From the NCBI GenBank assembly GCA_000708835.1, contig DF237415.1, forward strand, positions 11,982-75,981: a stretch of 64,000 bases of DNA, given 5' to 3'. A model generated the notes under the pieces. The model worked only from the letters and a program-made list of their open reading frames with translations, was not told where the DNA came from and made no database searches. Source of the stretch: Klebsormidium nitens (Eukaryota > Plantae > Klebsormidiophyceae). This document shows positions 35,557-51,540 of the stretch, piece after piece; position 1 is the stretch's first letter, and each line of letters opens with the position of its first letter. A program made the position numbers and the translations under genes.

Positions 35557-38500
35557 TTACAAAGAAGTTGACTCGACAACAGGAAGCAGTTTCGATATTT
35601 GCTCTAATGGAAGGTTGTCGGACGTAATTTTCCGAAGAGAAGGTGTGTTGTACTCTGAGCTCGGAAACTTCACCACCTGCAAAAAGACTGGGAAGAGTCA
35701 TAAACGGCGAATAATAGACCCAAGAGAATCATCGAACCGGAGACAAAGATGCCCTGCAGCCTACCAGGCCGCACAGCAGGCCCGCCCCGCTCACCGTCTT
35801 GCCCTCGGGTGTCGTGAGCTGCTCCCAGCCCTTCCGCTCCTGCTGCCCGATGTACTTGTCGAGCAGGGGGCCGTTCATGTTGATGGCCTGTCACCACGTG
35901 CCAGCAGAGGCGGCTCAGCAACGGGACAACGGACCCTAACGACCATAGCGAGAAAGAAGGCATGTGGCGCAGATCCCAATTGGGACCCCCCCCACCAGGG
36001 AGGGGGGTCAGCTGGATGATTTCATTTCAGTTGCATCAAAAGTTGGATGGCGGCATCTGTCCCGAAAACCAAGGGAAGGGCGTTCCAGATAAGCTTTACT
36101 GTGAGAGGCGCCGCATAAAATCTGCTGTCATCGGATGAGATCCACCTTGTTTGAGACAAGTGCCGGCTGTGCTGGGGGGCTCAGCGGCAGCGGACACGCA
36201 GCATAGCACCTTTAGACTTGGCTTCATTTCTTTCCACGCTTCCCTCTCTGCTCTTCTGTAGCAAAAGGCAAGGCTTCTGCGGCGCCACAGCTCAAAAGAA
36301 GAGCTGGTTTGCCGCGTGCACATCAACCACCGGCTCCTGCCCTGGCCCCGCAGTGGGCGGCCCTGTCCGGTGCCTGGCTGCTGCGGCAGGGGGGGGCTCA
36401 CCTCTGCGAGGACGGGCAGCGGCACCCGCAGGTACGTCATGGCCAGCACGTGCACGGCATACCGCTGCATCGCCGCCTCAAAGCCTGCACCAAGCCATGC
36501 GCCGCACACCGCTCACACCCTCTCGCTGCATGCTGCTGATCAGCGCTGACATGGGTCACAGCAGCAGGAGCAGCGGAACCAGGCAGAATGCGGCCATGCG
36601 AGCTGCACACCTTTCACAACGGACATTTTCACAGGGTGTATGCGGGTGAGGCTGTGGGCGTGCCCTGTGAGTCAGGCACTGTGGGCGGGGGCACGCCGTA
36701 CCTGGGATGACCTCCAGGATGTCGCGGTTGCGCGCCGCTTCGGTCCAGAACTCCTTGAAGCGCGCGGTCTGCACCACAGTACAGGCAGCGTGTCAGAGGG
36801 GGTGGCCGTCGGGTGCCAAGGACGTGGGGGTACGGCGGGGCACAGGAGCACCATGTGCGGCCCGGGGAGCCAAACAAATCCTCGTTTTAAAGGGTGGTGC
36901 TTCACACGTGCTCCTCGCATTTCGGATTTGCCACTAGTAGAGGCAGAGCTGAGACTACGAGAGCATAGCGCGTNNNNNNNNNNNNNNNNNNNNNNNNNNN
37001 NNNNNNNNNNNNNNNNNNNNNNNNNNNNNNNNNNNNNNNNNNNNNNNNNNNNNNNNNNNNNNNNNNNNNNNNNNNNNNNNNNNNNNNNNNNNNNNNNNNN
37101 NNNNNNNNNNNGTCCTCCATGTTTGGCAGAACTGATTGACCGATCCCAGATCGACCTCAGTCAGAAGAAACACAAGCTCTAAAGTGCACGCGGACTGCAG
37201 TTCCCCAGCAAGGGCCGCTCGTGCCTCGCAGGCGGTTTGCGCGAGGGCTGGCCCGGTGGCCCGCAGGCGGGGGCTGACCTCGAGGAGGGCGTCCAGGTTG
37301 AGCAGCGTGGCAAAGGGCTCCTCCACGTGCAGGCGCTCCGGGATGAGGCTCATGTACAGCTGGAAGTCGAGCGCGGGGAGCGCCATCAGGCCCTGCACGC
37401 AGGCCACACCACCGCTGCCAGCAGGCTCCCCCGCACGGACGGGCCACCAGCCAGACATGCAGGCCGGGGGCAAGCAATCGAATGGGGCACAAAGCCAGGT
37501 GCAAAGCATAGCCCCAGTCTCGGAGACGAACGTAATGCTCGTCAAAATTCTGGGCCGCTTCAACAAGCCTTCCTTTTTGTACCCAGTGGTGCGAACGTAA
37601 GGAGCTTCTGACGAGACTGAGACGAAAATTGTGCAAGAGCAGTGGTGTAGGCTCAGAGTGTGTTCGCGCACCGTTCCTCTGACCAGATGCCACCTGCCAG
37701 TGCCTTACCTTGACCAGGATGCGCGCCACAGCATGGATGTTCACGCTCGCAGGATTGAACTGCACCAGTAAGGAGCGCACTCAAACCTTGCTCTCTGCCA
37801 GCGCACAGGTCTCAAACCTCTCCCAAGTGATTGCAGTTCTGACGGGCTGACGTGTCAACCAATGACCGAAAGTCGACAAGGACAATTCAAAAGAGCTCTT
37901 GTCAGCACGGACAGCGGTAATGGCCGAGCGCCAGCACTTGCAGGCCTAACCGACCAGCTCTGGGCACCACTGTGGCGACGGCAGCTTTCCGCACGGGGTT
38001 GTCCAGTCTCACAATCTGCGAATCCAAGGAAGCCCAGGAGCAAGGGACACCGCTTACCTGATATAATCGCAGGAGGCAGAGGTTTGCGTTGAGATCGTAG
38101 GTCTCAGATACAATCTGCACAGAAACAAGAAAGTTGGACGGCAGTTCCAAAGAAAGAACTCTGTTCAAATGAGCACAGCGATCTGGCCAGGCCCCTCTCT
38201 TGCAAGCAAGGAGCCCCACGTACAAACTCAAGCTTGAAGTCAATGGGCACTACAATGCTTACCTGCTCTTGCACATAATCCTCCAGGTCAGGAAGCACGT
38301 CCGGATTGTCTGCAAATCACATAGCGAGTGAGTCTGATTGCAGCAGCTTCAAATCCTGCGAGCACCACCATTAGGGTGTACCCATCGAACTGAACTCACC
38401 AATCACCAATTACCTTCCCACTGGTCCAATGTCCATTGACAGAGATGTTGCAAACCAAGTTGTAAAAAAGTTTTACCCCGCTTCCTTTCTTGTCCTCATA

Positions 38501-41889: not shown

Positions 41890-44800
41890 TCAAATACTGC
41901 TGATGCTTATAGAGTTCATGCTCCAAGCGGTAGCCTGTTGCAGGACAACGGAATTGGATCCATTGTTGAAGAGAAACACTCGCGCTTCTTGATCCATGGC
42001 TCCGAGCGGGTACGAACGTGTTGTAACGACAGTGTGGCCCTTTTCCGCAAACACTTCAACCACCGAGTGGTCAACCTGCAGCAAGACGTCTCAAGTGAGA
42101 TCGAAGTTTCAGTCCCATTCTCGGGCACATGATCTTGACAGAGAGGCATGGACTGTGCTGTCAGCTTCTTCGTTCTCAGATCGGTTTGCATCAACTTCCC
42201 AGCTGATTGTGAGGGTGCCTTTCTGGTCAGGCAGGTACGTTCATCATTTTAATGTTTGCTCTCACTTCACGAAGTATCAGATGAACCCTGTCTCTGCCAG
42301 CATTTCTAGCGTTGAGACTCCTCCGTTCTTGGGCAGCGGCATAAGACTTTCTGAGGCCCCTAGCGGCACGGTGGGCAGCTCCTTACGATCACTCTCATGC
42401 TCAGCGTCGCCCCGTCCCCTTCCCGCCTGACCGCGCTGCCGTAGACGCCCCGGTCCGTGTCGGGGGCCAGCGACGCGGCGCGCAGGTCGGTGCAGACGCG
42501 CGCCACCGCGGCAGTGCCGTTGCGCGCCAGCTCGAAGTAGGCCGCCGTCCGCTCCGCCCCGGCCGCCAGCACCGCGACGCCGAACGGGCCCACCGCCAGC
42601 GCGCCGCCGCCCGCCGACCCCTCTGCAACAGGCGGCCAAACAACTTGCAGCGGTCGAGAGAGACTGGCAACGACGAGGCATTCCAGCTGCTTCACGTGAC
42701 GACGACGTCCTCGCCGAGGGGTCCAGTCCGCAGATACTAGCGGCCGCGCAAAAGACTGAAAGCTCACGAGCACGGACCCCTCCTCCCGCATCTAACGGAG
42801 CTGGTGCTAGAGGCAGTGGCCGTTTTCGCCAAGCACTGCGCGCTTTTGAGGAGGGCTGCATGCGTCACCTGGGCTGCAGCGGGACGGCTCGCTGGCGGCG
42901 GATGCGGGGGGCGGCGCTGCGGCCTCGTCCTGCGGGGGCAGGGTGAACGCCAGCTCCAGGTCCAGCTGCACGCAACGGGCGCCGCGAGCAGTCAGCCGGG
43001 AAGACGGGAAGAAGGCCCCTCAAATCTGACAGCCTCAACTTGAGGAAGCCGTCGAGAACTGCGAGACGGAAGCCACGAAGCTGTGCCGCCCGTGCGAAGC
43101 CACAACCGGGGCTTGCGGCCCTGACCTGGCAGCCCGCCACTCCCGGCAGCTCCAGCCGCGCCCCCGGCGGCAGCGTCACGTTGCGCAGCGTGGCCGCGTG
43201 CTTGCGCAGCGCGTCCACCTCCGCAACGGGCCACTGCACAATGTCCGCCCCGTCCGCGGCCAGCTCCACGGCGCGCGGCAACGCCTGCACACAGCGCGCC
43301 ACACGCGCTCACCAGGGGCAACAGCTCGAAGGCGGGCGGAGTGCGCAGGGGCCCCCCAGGCGGGCACGGAACGACGTGCGCCCGTGACGGGAAGTTCTGC
43401 AGGCATTCATCGGGGGGCCGTTCGACGAAGTGAAGCAAAGCCAGCCGGCAGCCGCGCCGCCGCGCCACCTACCTGCACCGAGGCCCAACCTCGCCTGATA
43501 TTGCTTTGCTGCGAGTCGGTTTCGTAGATCCACCCGAACAAGACACGCCGCCCCTTCACGGGATCGTAGAACGACTTGGAAGCATAGTACTGCACGGGAA
43601 AAAGGGCGGCGACAGGGGTGGCTGTCAGCAGCAGATGCAAATCGCGGTCGGCATGGCGGCAGCTATGGCAGGGTACCCAGCAGATCTGGCCACAGGCGCT
43701 TCCGCCCTTCTCGTGCCTTGCAGCATGGAAGGACACCGGCTGTGCACACCGGCCGGCTTGACACCCCGCGTTTGGCACGCAGCTGTGGCCCGCAACGGAC
43801 CTTGCCGTAGTCGAGCAGCCTCCCCTGGCTGACGTCGTCCGGCCCGCGCGGCGCCCAGGTGTCGGTGGCGGCGTCATAGCTGCCGAGCGCGTACGAGTCG
43901 GTCAGCGTGTGGTCGATGCTTGCCTTGAGCACGTACGGCGTGCCGGCCGGGTGCACGCCCAACGGCAACCCCGCGTTGTGAGCGACAGGGAACAGATCTA
44001 GAACCACGGGAGGGCCCTCGTCAGCGGGCAGGCCCGGCGCGCAGCAAGCAGCGACGCAGGCCGTGCGAACAGGTGTACACTCGCATCCGGCAAGGCATGC
44101 ATTATATCTAGCGCTCTGGATCGCGATTGATAGCGTAAGATGTCAAGGTGAGCTCTCGAATCCAGCACACATACCAGTGGCGAAAAGGGTACATCGGCAA
44201 CTCACCTGGGCACTCCCACATTGGGGAACCTGCGAATATAGGAATGCATCACATCAAGGTTCAGTCTTCAATGATCAAGTTTTCCTTTCGCCCTAACATT
44301 TCATTGAAGAATCAAGATTGAAGATTCAAGGTCAAGAGATTCAAGAGACGCTTGCACGCTCTCGGACGTCCTGAAGACGGCAGGCTGAGTTCTCCACGCA
44401 GTGCTGGAGCCCTAGCGAGCCCGTGTGCCCGCGTGCACAGGCGGGGAGGTGGCCGTACCTGGCACCGCGTGGAGGGGCGCGCTGGTCGGCGTCCAGGTGC
44501 GGAAGTCGGGGCTGCTGTACATCTGCCAGGTACGAAAGAAATAACGCTGCTCTCAACCCGGAAACTTGGTACGATTCGCCAAAACGGTTGATGCCACGAC
44601 AAAAAAATCTGCAAAGGCGCATTCGAAGGCCAGAACTGCAGGGCCGCAAGGTTCAAAGTACCCCTTTCCATTGCATCGGCGCCTCCATTAAAGGAGTCAC
44701 GTTTAACGGCATTGGGTTCAACGGGCGACTCTGATGTCCGGCGCACTGTCTTCACGAGGCCAAGTGTGGATCTCTGAGAGCCGGTGCCCCCACCAGTGCC

Positions 44801-47499
44801 GCGCCAGAGCCGGCGAGCCGCGCCCCCACGAGCATGCGCCATCTGCCGTCTCCGGCCAGCCACTGCCATCAGACGGGCCACTCAGGGAGTCAGACGAGCC
44901 GCAGCCAGCAAAGTCGACAGCGTGGGATGCAAGTCTGCAAGCACAACAGACCGCAGAGGAGAAGAAAAGAATCTGACCAACGCAGCTGACGACGGCTGCT
45001 TCGCTAAGGAAACGTACCGCGGTCGTCGGATCCCGGAAATCCAGGTTGTTCACACCCGGGGGGGGAGATATCACAGGATTCTGCGGCGACTTTTTCCATT
45101 GACGCAGCAGAGGATCTGCAGCATCCACTGGCGTCGCCAGATTTTGAACCTGCAGGAGGGGCCGCCAAGAGGGTCCGTCAGGTGACGGTCGCGTAAATTG
45201 TTGGAACGCCTACACTACCCAGTGGGGCCGGCCATCAAGCGAGACGGCGACCTGGAGAACAGCCACGGACGGAGTGTGGCCAGACGGAATGGGACGTGCG
45301 AGTCACTGGACTGACGCAGGGCACCCGTCTGGCAAACGGCACGGGCAGCCGCCGTGGCCAGCGTGGTGCATGGCAGCATGGCAGCGTCGCTGGGCATCCC
45401 CGCGAGGGCTGGGCGCGGGCTGGGGGCTGACCTGCACCGACTGGTTGGTGAGCCCCGTGTACACCAGCACGACGCTGCCGTCCTGCAGCACGGTCGCAGA
45501 CCCGGACCTGCACGCAAGCAGGGGCACGGCGTGAGCGGGACGAGGGGGAGGGGCGACCAGAAGGGCCGTGGGCCAATGGCGAGGGTGTCGCTGAGAAGAG
45601 TGCGGAAGGGGACGTAAGCGAGTAGGACGTGCTAGGGCCCAGTTGTCACTTGGGGAAGAAAGAACCAGCATGTGCTGAGCTGTGCTTTTTGGACTTTGAT
45701 CTTAGACAGCACTTTGTTCAGGTTTGACAACTCCAAGGTGTATGCGGGACCAATACCCCCTATTGCATTTCAGAACGTAATTCATTTGGATTGCAAAGGA
45801 GCTTGTCTGGGCAAGGCCCGAAAACAAGACTGATAGTCTGGAAAGGATGCTTTCAAAAAGCAAGCCTGGCTGAAGTGTTGCTCAAATGCCTGATGGGTTG
45901 ATTGCAGACTCACCAGACCCCCTGCCGATCGTACCATTCATCTGGCGCGAGCGCTGCAGGTTCAGAAGCACGAAAGTAGAATTCGTATCGACAAAAGCAT
46001 AGAGACATGTTGCCAGCAGATTACCCTTGTTCCCTAACAGAACGCCGATTTGCTTTGAACTTTCAAATGCGAGTGCAGATCAACCTGAGCTGGTGATTGC
46101 AAGTTGGCAAGAGCAAAGCTTCCAAACTGACTGCCGAGGTTCTACGCGTACATTGTGCAGCGATGCCATGTAGCCTGGAGGACGGGACGCCTACCAATGG
46201 GACCCGTGTTCCAGTGGATCAGGTCACTGGAGACGGCATGGCCCCTGCACACAAGATCTGGATACTCACATCTCATCACAGCCAGGAAACCACTCTCATC
46301 TCAGAGTATGTCATCTGAGCTTTCTTGAGCAGTGCCAGGACTTGCTGCGCCCTATGCTCCATTTTACGCAGGTACCTCATTCACACAGGTAGCTCACATT
46401 GTTGACAGGATGCCTAGCGATGGGGTTGACAGGAATCAGCGTTGAACTGTGTAAGCTTAGAAGATGAAAGGAGTTTACCATGTAATGTTTCCCCAAACTG
46501 CAGCGAGGCCGTTGTACTGCAAGTCCATGACAGAGAATCTTTTGAGCAGTAGGGCTAGCTTACAGCATCCATACTTCCTTCAGGAGTCAGCTACACCTGT
46601 AACCATTTGACCTCAATCTGCACTCAGACTATGTCAACGGTGTCTGCTTAACTGATACCAAGGCTTGTCAGACAACTGAGCCAAGTTGAGAGCTGTATAC
46701 CTTCCAGACCTTTTTGACATTCAAAAGGTCCTTAGTTTGGAAGCACCCTCTATATGCAACTTGCAAGATACGGGATTGATGACTCGAGCATACCTGAAAG
46801 AACAAGTGATAGTAGCCTTTGTAGAAGACCGGGCCTGCAAGGGGGGGAGATCAAAACAGATTGGTGCTGCTATCATTGTGCACAGAAGACGTGAGTCAGG
46901 ACATGTTTGCAGGGTCAGTGGTCGGACAGTGGACCAGGTCTGCGGCACGTCAATCTGAATGGTGCGAGTTCTGTGTGCAACACTGAAGGTGGGGAAGCCG
47001 GCCTTGAGAGGCCAGCTAGACTGGCAGTCATGTGAGGCAGGGTCCGAGTTGCAGCTGAAAGGGGCTCACCATTTGGATCATTCATCCAATGACCATCAGG
47101 TGGTTGAAAGTGAAACGCCGAGCGGTAGCTTGCTGCCAGAGATGGCTTGTGCTTGACTGCGTGCTTGCCGGTAGTGAGCTCCAGTACAATGCCAAGGCCC
47201 AACACTAGAAGAATAACTATGGCAATTGCAAGCATGAGAACTTTCCTTTGCTCATACACTGCCCTTCTCCATCGCGCTTGTCTTGAGACAAGACGATGAG
47301 GCCAGAACTCTTTTTCCGGGCCCTCATTGCTGATGTCCAGTGTATGTCCCAAGATCTCCGCCTGATGGAAGGACGCATCATGAGATGCTGTAACATAGCC
47401 TGCCTTCGCTACCTCATTGTCTTTATCCAGGATGTCGATGCTAGCACTGTCTAAATTTCCCTGCTCCGGAAGCAAGCTTATTGCATCTTTCTCCTCCAT
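41890..47499 (-). CDS. GH32 beta-fructofuranosidase (acid invertase / fructan hydrolase family) with N-terminal signal-anchor
   Basis: Spliced exons give [127 protein letters not shown] and C-terminal [25 protein letters not shown]. All three catalytic motifs (NDPN, RDP, EC) are present. TGA at 41890-41892. Confidence 0.95.
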
Positions 47500-47983
47500 C
47501 GGTTAGGCAGCTCATACGCCTACAACATGAATGTAAGCCTCTGACTTTTTTGAGATAGTTGACAGCCTTCTAAGGAGCCAGGAAAAGCTCTCGAAGCATG
47601 CCCCTCTGTTCCAAGTTTACCAGCTGCCGAGGAGGGAATACATATTAAGAACTTTCAGCCCCGGCAGTGCTGGTTTCTCATTTCCTGAGCGCAGGGACCG
47701 AGATCACATGGTTTTCCGTCGATAGAGCCCCAGCAAAGCGCCCAGTCCTAGCAGCATGCTGTGAATTCATCCGCTGTAAATTTGCATGACTCAGATTTTA
47801 GGGTTTGACTTTTGACATGCAGATCTATGCACAGTCTCGTTCGGCCTTCACACGCTGGCTGTATAATACCTACGGTACATGATAAGTGCCGTAGCTGTAA
47901 ACGGCAGGTCTAAGTGTCCTGTTCACGTATCCAGTCCCGTCCGTCGAGGTCTACAGCTGTCCTGAGACGTGAGTGAGTCGTTA

Positions 47984-48614: not shown

Positions 48615-51540
48615 ATGGGTATCACTAAGCCCCTCGGATGTGCGGTGCTGGTGCTGCTGGTGCAATTTCTGAGGGGCGTGCATAGCGGGGGCATGGCTAG
48701 CGCTATATCGACTGACGGCATGCGTTTTGTGGATGCGGAGGGCAGGACTGTCATCCTGAGAGGGTTCAATGTCGCCGGCGATGCCAAGCTGCCAGACTAC
48801 CGCCCCCTCAAAAACCTGACCACTCTCAATGGTGAGCCATCTTCCCCTTTGCAAAGGCAGCATGCTGCGTAATTAGAAGCTCCTATGCAGGGCATGTGCC
48901 TGCATGTAATCATTTTCTTATGCGGGAGTCTTTTGAGCACGTCTAGCAGACCCTCTCTGCCAAGCAGGTGAATTGCCACGCTGGACCATATTATGCTTTG
49001 ACGCTGATTTATACTTCCCACAGATCTGAGACGTTTTGGGGTGAATGTTGTGAGGAGCTTATTTATCTGGTAAGCGGAAAGAAGCCCTCTGCGCTCAAAT
49101 AAGTCAGCAATTGCTAGTCCTTTTCTTCAGGGTTCTTGTACGTCAATTTCTGTTGTGCCCCTCATTCTTGAACCTCTCCATTCACTCCATCAGACTCTTT
49201 ATGTTTTTCGCGTTAGCTACTCTTCTTTATATATCATGGGATTTTGATGCTAAGAGGAATAGTTATAGACCATCTTCTGCTGGCTCCCAATTCTCGTGTT
49301 TCCCTCAGCTGCACTCGGCTGACTACCGCTCCCTGGCTTGTTGCTCCAAGTTTGCACGCTTTCCTTGATGACAAACCGCCTAGCAGCAAGGCACCTCATA
49401 TGATCGGACTGGCCTCCTTGCACTCTCTGGCGTGCAGGGAGGCGTACGAGGGCGTGCGTGGGGTGTACGACGCCAGCTACCTGGAGTACCACCTGGGGGT
49501 GGTGGACCACCTCGCGCGCCTGGGCATCCACACCATCCTGGACATCCACCAGGTGAGGACGCCCCCCCGCACCTGCGCAGCCCCAGCCCAGCGGCTGCTG
49601 CAACCAAGCGGGCAAGCAGGCCAGGGCTGCCTGCCCTCTCATTGGGCTATTCTACAGGCTGAAGTCCACAAGACCTGGACGTCCTGGCTCCGCCGCGCTG
49701 ACGATGGAAGGCCGGCTGCTGCTGCTGCAGGATGCATTCTCCCGCTATACGCTGGGGGGTTGCGGTGATGGCTTCCCGCTGTGGGCCATCCCTGCCCGCT
49801 TCTCTCCTGCGGCTCCGGACAACTCCCTCCAGAATTGCTCCCGATGGGGGCCGAGGCTGGTCACGGATCAGCCCACCCGCCGTGTTTTTGAGGCCTTCTA
49901 CAAGTGAGTGGGCTTGTGCAGCAGGAGCTGCGGCCAAGAGCCTAGACATGGCTTTGGAGGGCCTGCCCACTGGCGCCATCGCTCAAGAATACTGCTATGC
50001 AGGTTGAGGAGGATGAGAGTCTCCACAAACAGAGCGGGGGAAAGGCATCCTGAGTGTACTTGCATGCCGCTGTTTGAACTTGTCGATCTGCCTTCTCCGA
50101 CATCCTGGTTTGTGCCACCCTGGCAGCAACGAGGGCGGCGTGCGAGACAGTTACCTGGCCCTGGTGGAACACCTGGCGGGCGTGTTCCGCACGCGGCCGT
50201 CTGTCATTGGCTTCGACCTGCTCAACGAGCCCGTGGGCGACGAGGTGCGCCACGTGGCCCCCCTCTACACCGACGCAGCCGCCCGCGTGCGCGGCGCCAA
50301 CAGCAGCGCGCTCATCCTGGCGACCCCCGGCTTCCTCGTTGGCTCCGGCTTCGTGCCCACGCGGCTCCGCCCGCCGCCCGTGGACCACGCCGTCTTCAGC
50401 CCGCACTTCTACAACTTCGTCAGTGAGGACCCACCTGGCAAGCGCAGCGCAGCAAGCCTCCTCGTCTCTCAGCTGCGCCTGCGCACATGTCTGGACAGCG
50501 TGCAGGCAAGCCCCGCTGCTCCAGTCCTGATTGCCTGCCGGGTTCGTGCTGTGCAGACCTTGCTGGCGGCTACGACTTTGGTGTGTACACGCGCTCGGTG
50601 CTGCGGCGGCTGCTGGCCGTGTCGCGCTCATGGGGCGAGCCGCTGTTCTTGGGCGAGTTCGGGGTGTTCCACGGCCGCTTTGCCGACCTGTTTGCCGCCG
50701 ACATGTACCGCTTCCTGGACGACAACTTCCTGTCCGGCTGTCAGGTGCACCCGCTTCCCATACTCGACATTCCAGATTGTGGAAATGTGACTCCGTATTG
50801 TGTCGTCACTGATATGATACACTCTGTTGTTGCATACGCCCCCAAAACTGCTGTGGCGCTTGCCCCCGCTCGTCGTGTGCGTGGCTGTCTGGCTGACCCC
50901 GCAGCTGGCGCGTGCAGTGGAGCTACACCACCAACTGGTCCCCCGACAAAAAAGATGGTTGGAACGGGTGAGCATCGTACCGCCACCAGACCCTCTCTCC
51001 AAGGAACAGGTTCTGCCAAATTGTTCTGGAGTGCGGACCCTGTTAGCTTACCCGATCGGAACTTGCCTGTGGTCTTGCCCCTGGCTTTGCGCCTGGCTGG
51101 ATAGCATGTCCTTGTTGCCGCCGCTCGTGCGTCAAAGATGCTGGCCCCACTCCGCCATTCCCTCGCCGCCTTATGTCCACCTCTGACTCGTTGGCCCGCA
51201 CCTGGGCCCCCTCTGTCTCAGCGAAGATTTGTCCGTTGTGGCCGGCGGGGTAACGCGGGGCTTCCCCTTCACGCCATCTCCTCGAGTTCTTGCGGGGACC
51301 CCCCTTGTCGCTCGCACCGTGCCCCACGTCTCGTACGAGCTGTCGTGGCGCAGCAACGGGGCACCACGGACGAGGGCCGCCGAGATTTATTTTCCTCTGA
51401 ACGAGTTCTGCGGTTCTAACGGATTTGCAACTATTGAGGCATCCCCGTCGCTGGAGTGTGGGTATCAGGATGCATACTCTCTCCTGTGTAATCAAACAGC
51501 TGTTGCAGAGGGCACGCTCTCGGTGCGAGTAAATTGCTAG
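48615..51540 (+). CDS. Secreted GH5 glycoside hydrolase, endoglycoceramidase/EGCrP-like
   Basis: Signal peptide MGITKPLGCAVLVLLVQFLRGVHS; FVDAEGRTVILRGFNVAGDAKLP; FGVNVVRSLFIW-EAYE; ILDIHQ-DAFSRYTLGGCGDGFPLWA; acid/base GFDLLNEP (Glu codon 50227-50229); VFSPHFY; nucleophile LFLGEFG (Glu codon 50655-50657); WSYTTNW; PRVLAGTP in the C-terminal domain. TAG at 51538-51540. Confidence 0.88.

Follow-up and report, generated by a model that had tools for sequence, protein, structure and literature searches.

A transcribed, membrane-anchored GH32 gene of Klebsormidium nitens that probably represents the ancestral type of plant acid invertases

A 64,000-nucleotide stretch of the genome of the alga Klebsormidium nitens (assembly GCA_000708835.1, contig DF237415.1, positions 11,982 to 75,981 of the forward strand; this whole stretch is the window below, and all coordinates refer to it) carries a gene of glycoside hydrolase family 32 (GH32) on its minus strand at 41890-47499. 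The gene is transcribed, and its product combines an N-terminal dileucine box and membrane anchor with the catalytic motif WECPD. We favor the reading, at a probability of about 0.6, that it encodes a plant-type acid beta-fructofuranosidase, likeliest a sucrose invertase, which is sorted to the vacuole and represents the form of the family before it divided into vacuolar and cell-wall types. An initial annotation had described a GH32 gene with the motif D-A-I-S-L-L, a basic stretch, a single transmembrane anchor, and WECPD, and all of these are present in the RNA-confirmed model described here.

Stop-free segments in three frames hold the landmarks of the GH32 family, many short introns interrupt the gene, and the gene model was obtained by enumerating in-frame GT-AG joins between neighboring stop-free segments. 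The coding span runs from the ATG at 47499-47497 to the stop at 41892-41890, the same extent as in the initial annotation, and comprises 16 exons and 1956 nucleotides (nt) encoding 651 amino acids (651 codons plus the stop). The introns measure 155 to 406 nt, are all of the GT-AG type, and mostly end in a GCAG acceptor. Spliced contigs from four public runs, each from a different study, carried 15 of 15 joints at the modeled coordinates: 12 joints were found in all four runs, 2 in three runs, and 1 (42622/42869) in a single run, with good flanks. The parts skipped in these contigs read CT..AC on the plus strand, which corresponds to GT..AG on the strand of the gene. Such spliced contigs can be obtained only from RNA, which shows that the gene is transcribed and confirms the model. 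These contigs are unbroken from 47069 to 55-69 nt past 47700 and thus cross the whole of exon 1, so the tail and the membrane segment that it encodes are part of the mRNA. Transcripts starting downstream of the anchor, which would have undermined the initial annotation, were therefore not what we found, although the contigs would also be compatible with additional, shorter transcripts.

Exon 1 (47070-47499) encodes the cytosolic tail, the basic stretch, the transmembrane segment, a short linker, and NDPN together with the first base of the following Gly codon. The D-A-I-S-L-L motif spans residues 5 to 10 (47470-47487, minus strand), and a charge count gave a net charge of +5 for the basic stretch at residues 72 to 86 (47242-47286, minus strand). 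A single hydropathy peak exceeded 1.6, namely residues 87 to 106 (47182-47241, minus strand; Kyte-Doolittle 19-residue mean, 3.28), which leaves a tail of 86 residues before the transmembrane segment. The net charges flanking this segment, +5 before and +2 after, fit an N-in, type II orientation. Given that 86 residues precede the hydrophobic segment and that positive charge lies on its N-terminal side, the segment is predicted to be a signal anchor that places the catalytic domain in the lumen, rather than a cleavable signal peptide. Judged by sequence, the protein has the type II topology of plant vacuolar invertases; the arrangement typical of cell-wall invertases, a cleavable signal peptide without a tail, does not apply, as the tail is present in the RNA contigs. 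A transit peptide or a plain signal peptide at the N terminus was considered and rejected on account of the 86 mostly acidic residues ahead of the sole hydrophobic segment.

The D5-A-I-S-L-L10 motif is the only match to [DE]xxxL[LI] in the 651-residue protein. An exhaustive protein search with exon 1 returned a single match (P0001). This match corresponds to exon 1 of a homologous gene, which lies on a metagenome contig of 34.8 kb (Ga0590114_0005763, referred to here as L001). A word search with the open reading frame of exon 1 gave no match, as its length filter and the small number of words in common rule out full-length relatives. Modeled in the same way, the L001 homologue has 652 amino acids, is 63% identical to the window protein, and carries a transmembrane segment at the same place as well as WECPD. 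Its protein starts M-E-K-D-S-I-Q-L-L-P, and two near-identical variants of it (P0002 and P0004) keep D-S-M-Q-L-L, so the position of the dileucine box is retained throughout. Since the tails of the window and L001 proteins are only ~32% identical outside the box, the box forms a conserved island. A further relative, the transcript P0138 (Logan ERR12684112), is 49% identical to the window protein and has E-N-Q-R-L-V at residues 5 to 10, within an E-x-x-x-L-V-P box at residues 5 to 11; its transmembrane segment lies around residue 65, and it too carries WECPD. At the sequence level, the algal box is similar to the one that most seed-plant vacuolar invertases have close to the N terminus, LLP or LP[DE]; an LP-type match was present in 119 and LLP in 23 of the 173 land-plant vacuolar invertase tails retrieved, in which LLP or LP[DE] is the common form.

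The catalytic part of the protein is that of a GH32 enzyme. NDPNG starts at residue 140, within a canonical WMNDPNG, RDP at residue 264, and WECPD at residue 318, so that the RNA-confirmed model contains the complete catalytic triad (Asp141, Asp265, and Glu319). RDP lies at 45027-45035 in exon 7 (45018-45149), whereas the acid/base residue Glu319 is encoded by a micro-exon of 24 nt, exon 10 (44206-44229), which reads S-P-M-W-E-C-P plus the first base of an Asp codon. Although splicing splits the codon for the Asp of WECPD, only one in-frame GT-AG join is possible from the WECP exon and it gives Asp; this WECP-D joint was present in four of four runs, as was the joint on the other flank of exon 10. 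Exon 11 (43801-43997) completes the motif. In an exon-wise Pfam scan, exon 7 and exon 12 (43473-43589) exceeded the cut-off of PF00251, the N-terminal five-bladed propeller, and PF08244, the C-terminal sandwich, matched exon 16 with an E value of 8e-10; this last exon, with the stop codon, occupies 41890-42075 and encodes the end of the C-terminal beta-sandwich domain. Both domains of a GH32 enzyme are thus accounted for. The L001 and P0138 proteins are likewise full-length GH32 proteins, with Pfam finding both domains on P0138 (L124).

The algal protein has much in common with the vacuolar invertases of land plants (the carrot, tomato/tobacco AIV, and Arabidopsis VI types, P0097, P0094, and ~190 others), with which it shares the GH32 fold and catalytic triad, a cytosolic tail bearing a Leu-Leu or Leu-Pro box, a basic stretch, a single signal anchor, and an acidic isoelectric point (pI 5.5 for the algal catalytic part). 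The intron after NDPN is common to both, and identity to seed-plant vacuolar invertases reaches 47-49% over the catalytic domains, compared with 40% to a cell-wall-type transcript. The alga differs from them in having WECPD instead of WEC[V/I/L]D and in its longer tail (86 residues, with the box at residues 5 to 11, versus ~25-45 residues in seed plants). The cell-wall invertases and fructan exohydrolases of seed plants (AtcwINV1, 2AC1; chicory 1-FEH, 1ST8; P0214; L028) share WECPD, the Asp239 equivalent, and the fold with the alga, but they have a short cleavable signal peptide without a tail, are only ~40% identical, and form a separate clade.

We propose that the protein would be inserted as a type II membrane protein, with the 86-residue tail remaining in the cytosol, the transmembrane segment serving as an uncleaved signal anchor, and the propeller and sandwich domains facing the lumen. 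Like the vacuolar invertases of land plants, the enzyme would then travel along the endomembrane route to a lytic or vacuolar compartment that is acidic, most likely directed by the N-terminal D-x-x-x-L-L-P box as an adaptor-binding signal, and there it would split stored sucrose and perhaps raffinose. In the cold, sucrose builds up in Klebsormidium, whose major soluble sugars include raffinose (PMC4207709). The destination of the protein, its release from the membrane, its substrate, and its pH optimum are predictions drawn from sequence.

The initial annotation had treated the Pro of WECPD as a cell-wall-type character, and the algal motif does match that of cell-wall invertases. However, Pro follows EC in 10 of 10 bacterial outgroup sequences as well as in L001, P0138, and the window protein, and no member of the cell-wall lineage has any other residue there; Val, Ile, or Leu occurs only in the land-plant vacuolar lineage and in an orphan sequence, L004. 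Since Pro is ancestral, WECPD is not diagnostic of the cell-wall type and carries no information about localization. The tail and transmembrane segment, for their part, were found in the algal sequences and P0138, throughout the vacuolar lineage, and in moss proteins with WECPD.

Relatives for a phylogeny were gathered in several ways. Scanning metagenomes with exon 12 gave 41 loci, among them intronless plant transcripts, and two of these transcripts (L003 and L004), used as full-length queries, returned ~190 seed-plant vacuolar invertases and P0138, along with proteins of Sphagnum, Physcomitrium, Ceratodon, Selaginella, Diphasiastrum, Adiantum, and Ceratopteris. A cluster look-up assigned P0137 and P0193 to Sphagnum and P0139 to Physcomitrium. 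The L003 and L004 searches yielded land-plant proteins only, and neither the window's own annotated protein nor any named streptophyte alga was among their matches. Bacterial GH32 sequences from a genome scan served as the outgroup.

A maximum-likelihood tree was built under LG+C20+F+G4 from an alignment of 51 rows and 597 columns, with the bacterial sequences as the root. In this tree, the window protein paired with L001 (100/100), and the pair lay, with P0138 and L004, at an unresolved base. This algal pair fell outside a land-plant clade (83/97) made up of the vacuolar lineage (100/98) and the cell-wall lineage (81/87). Fitch parsimony placed both the anchor and Pro at the root of the ingroup, with two changes from Pro to non-Pro and four changes between anchor and signal peptide. 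Together, the tree and the parsimony reconstruction argue that the anchor and Pro of the alga are best read as the ancestral state. The suggestion that the gene is an evolutionary intermediate was therefore roughly right, in that the gene is of ancestral type and basal to the land-plant acid invertases in the tree, but it is not a surprising mosaic. This agrees with a review that gives the acid invertases of algae a basal position and states that algae lack cell-wall invertases (PMC11821009); an older paper still calls the relation between the vacuolar and cell-wall types unclear (PMC4057674).

L004 itself (L004:150-2165) is a metatranscriptome GH32 protein of 672 amino acids that combines WECVD with a signal-peptide-like start and a long propeptide. 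A comparison with 5.8 billion proteins gave no relative exceeding ~50% identity, and in the tree L004 joins the algal sequences at the unresolved base.

Nor is the combination of motifs peculiar to the alga. Sphagnum proteins (the P0137 cluster, which includes S. balticum CAM6025648.1, and P0231) and Physcomitrium patens XP_024363697 (P0216) have a tail, a transmembrane segment, and WECPD, as in the alga, and WECPD is also present in cassava MeVINV3, an angiosperm vacuolar invertase (PMC6270675). P0137 is 44% identical to the window protein, and P0216 ranked below the rows listed. The tails of these moss proteins vary in length from 24 residues in Physcomitrium P0216 to ~150-170 residues in Sphagnum P0137 and P0231 and, unlike that of the alga, lack an N-terminal D-x-x-x-L-L box. 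In the tree, the anchored WECPD proteins of mosses grouped with fern and seed-plant cell-wall invertases (81/87) and not with the alga. The combination of anchor and WECPD would thus reflect the state before the land-plant split of the family, after which the vacuolar lineage may have replaced Pro with Val, Ile, or Leu, while the cell-wall lineage may have kept Pro and later shortened the anchor to a cleavable signal peptide.

Several observations weigh against a vacuolar-sorted, ancestral-type enzyme. A [DE]xxxL[LI] match arose in 15% of shuffles of the 86-residue tail, so the dileucine motif on its own is weak evidence. The canonical acidic dileucine is also rare in the tails of land-plant vacuolar invertases, occurring in 10 of the 173 anchored proteins retrieved; the dileucine sorting that the initial annotation ascribed to these enzymes is thus not generally of the canonical form. 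PF11837 (INV_N), the propeptide family of seed-plant vacuolar invertases, which lies between their transmembrane segment and mature N terminus, had no match at E ≤ 0.1 in the exon-wise Pfam scan, and a linker of only ~17 residues connects the transmembrane segment to the catalytic domain, such that proteolytic release of the seed-plant kind is no more than a possibility. Since PF11837 was also absent from the non-seed-plant matches, it defines seed-plant forms only; a protein-atlas match of exon 1 to a PF11837 cluster scored 0.75, which is below the useful level and serves only as a lead. The residue equivalent to Lys242 of AtcwINV1 is Leu in an alignment to 2AC1. With respect to the tree, support for the land-plant clade is moderate, and the approximately unbiased (AU) test rejected neither forced grouping of the algal pair, whether with the vacuolar lineage (P = 0.056) or with the cell-wall lineage (P = 0.058). 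The phylogeny proposed in the initial annotation as a check therefore placed the alga outside both land-plant lineages in the best tree without rejecting either alternative. The sampling included no named streptophyte alga other than this genome and few cell-wall invertases, some of them represented by single large exons, and the root rests on distant bacterial sequences.

The protein could instead be a true member of the vacuolar lineage, as its sister or within it, if the split predates the Klebsormidiophyceae, the cell-wall copy was lost, and Pro was retained or regained by reversion. The higher identity to vacuolar than to cell-wall-type sequences, the tail and anchor, and the acidic pI would all fit such a history, the AU test tolerates the grouping (P = 0.056), and algal acid invertases are called vacuolar in reviews (PMC11821009). 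We nevertheless regard it as unlikely, given that the best tree of this kind was 20.7 log-likelihood units worse (the same deficit as when the pair was forced into the cell-wall lineage), that the vacuolar lineage is uniformly non-Pro while the alga has Pro, and that PF11837 did not match. Faster evolution of the cell-wall invertases would by itself inflate the similarity to the vacuolar type.

It is also improbable, in our judgment, that the enzyme acts at the cell surface, with the anchor holding the catalytic domain outside the plasma membrane to split apoplastic sucrose or raffinose and the box serving endocytic recycling or nothing at all. A short linker without an obvious propeptide for release would suit an enzyme that stays anchored, and a grouping with the cell-wall lineage was not rejected (P = 0.058). 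In addition, Goetz and Roitsch 1999 (cited in PMC4057674) tie the Pro of WECPD in cell-wall enzymes to a lower pH optimum and better cleavage of raffinose. Yet the ancestral Pro is uninformative about location, phloem unloading, for which sucrose would have to be cleaved in the apoplast, does not take place in a unicellular or filamentous alga, and retention of a [DE]xxxL[LV]P box in three basal sequences argues for adaptor-dependent sorting.

The fold and the three motifs are all found in the fructan exohydrolases and fructosyltransferases of plants as well, and we therefore considered whether the protein might be a hydrolase or transferase of fructans or other fructosides instead of an invertase. 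Plant fructan enzymes arose late, within angiosperm lineages, which counts against this assignment. The best PDB matches of the algal exons were plant fructan exohydrolase, CWINV1, and 6-SFT; chicory 1-FEH IIa was the top match for exon 7 and 6-SFT for the WECPD exon, and the loss of the Lys242 equivalent points in the same direction. However, WMNDPNG is canonical, and exon 11 keeps the equivalent of the sucrose-binding Asp239 of AtcwINV1, the loss of which marks fructan exohydrolases; for the 2AC1 alignment, the near-identical exon of L001 was used, in which the stretch with these residues does not differ from that of the window protein. Moreover, the soluble sugars cited for Klebsormidium are sucrose and raffinose and not fructans (PMC4207709), although no search was aimed at fructans in the alga. 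A fructan enzyme thus seems very unlikely to us.

Independent acquisition of the anchor by the alga, which the initial annotation had offered as an option, is barely plausible: the algal and land-plant tails cannot be aligned beyond the short LLP-like box, and the algal tail is much longer than that of seed plants, but a tail and transmembrane segment are present in L001, P0138, and both land-plant lineages (bryophytes, lycophytes, ferns, and seed plants), and parsimony gave an anchored ancestor, with all four anchor/signal-peptide changes falling outside the window/L001 pair.

The exon-intron structure bears on the age of the family's mini-exon. L001 has the N-terminal box, transmembrane segment, and WECPD in common with the window gene, and its intron positions are nearly the same, but it retains a 9-nt mini-exon, ATCCAAACG, at L001:2734-2742 (also in L002), which is in phase 1 and encodes (D)PN(G). 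There, exon 1 ends in TGGATGAACG directly before the GT of the intron, exactly as in nearly all genomic loci obtained from land plants (ATCCNAAYG). The window gene keeps only the downstream intron, its mini-exon being joined to exon 1 (47070-47082). Since the mini-exon of L001 is like that of land plants, it seems to be older than land plants; a small sample of the open literature on the mini-exon did not mention algae. L001 also lacks three introns of the window gene, namely, the one that splits the WECPD Asp codon behind the micro-exon and those between exons 2 and 3 and exons 14 and 15. On five low-GC plant contigs (L032, L034, L038, L039, and L040), two mini-exons lie 6-7 kb apart, which points to tandem pairs of cell-wall-type invertase genes.

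A more detailed history can be put forward only tentatively, as we hold it to be slightly short of an even chance. The acid invertase of the streptophyte ancestor would have been a type II protein with a [DE]xxxL[LV]P box and the Pro motif, Val being an innovation; the cell-wall lineage would have existed as anchored WECPD proteins in mosses before the tail was lost; and the 9-nt DPN mini-exon would predate land plants, with retention in L001 and loss by intron loss in the window gene.

The remaining exons, all supported by the model and contigs, are exon 2 (46794-46834), exon 3 (46479-46516), exon 4 (46195-46244), exon 5 (45914-45953), exon 6 (45432-45507), exon 8 (44794-44862), exon 9 (44459-44522), exon 13 (43126-43284), exon 14 (42869-42965), and exon 15 (42387-42622), on the minus strand like the exons given above. 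Contigs of low depth cross introns 15 (42046-42414), 10/9 (43970-44486), 8 (44494-44823), 5 (45533-45941), and 2 (46490-46823); they could represent unspliced precursors, retained introns, or DNA carried over in the runs. The 5' leader (47500-47700, minus strand) is covered by contigs and extends ~55-69 nt past 47700. An in-frame stop lies directly upstream of the main ATG, and at least seven upstream ATGs are found between 47500 and 47790 on the minus strand. One of these (47515) opens a reading frame of 24 codons that overlaps the main start, which itself lies in a merely moderate context. Downstream of it, the first ATG in frame encodes Met89 (47235), where the transmembrane segment begins, and initiation there would give a signal-peptide-like N terminus and possibly a secreted form of the protein.

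Elsewhere in the window, a multi-exon, GC-rich neighbor on the plus strand (49244-51104) has a GH5 cellulase-domain match (PF00150; E = 1.3e-6 on 50074-50790). At ~36950-37130, the frames translate to a run of X, reflecting a stretch of N that marks an assembly gap, and tRNA and Rfam scans of the window gave no matches.

The gain from this gene is incremental, as a basal position in the family has already been assigned to the acid invertases of algae in reviews. Even so, it provides a concrete, transcribed algal gene that would stand for the state before acid invertases divided into vacuolar and cell-wall types, a division of importance to sugar partitioning and crop yield. The gene further corrects a common reading of the WECPD/WECVD rule, since an ancestral Pro tells nothing about location, and it may offer a simple system in which to test how pH optimum and targeting diverged.

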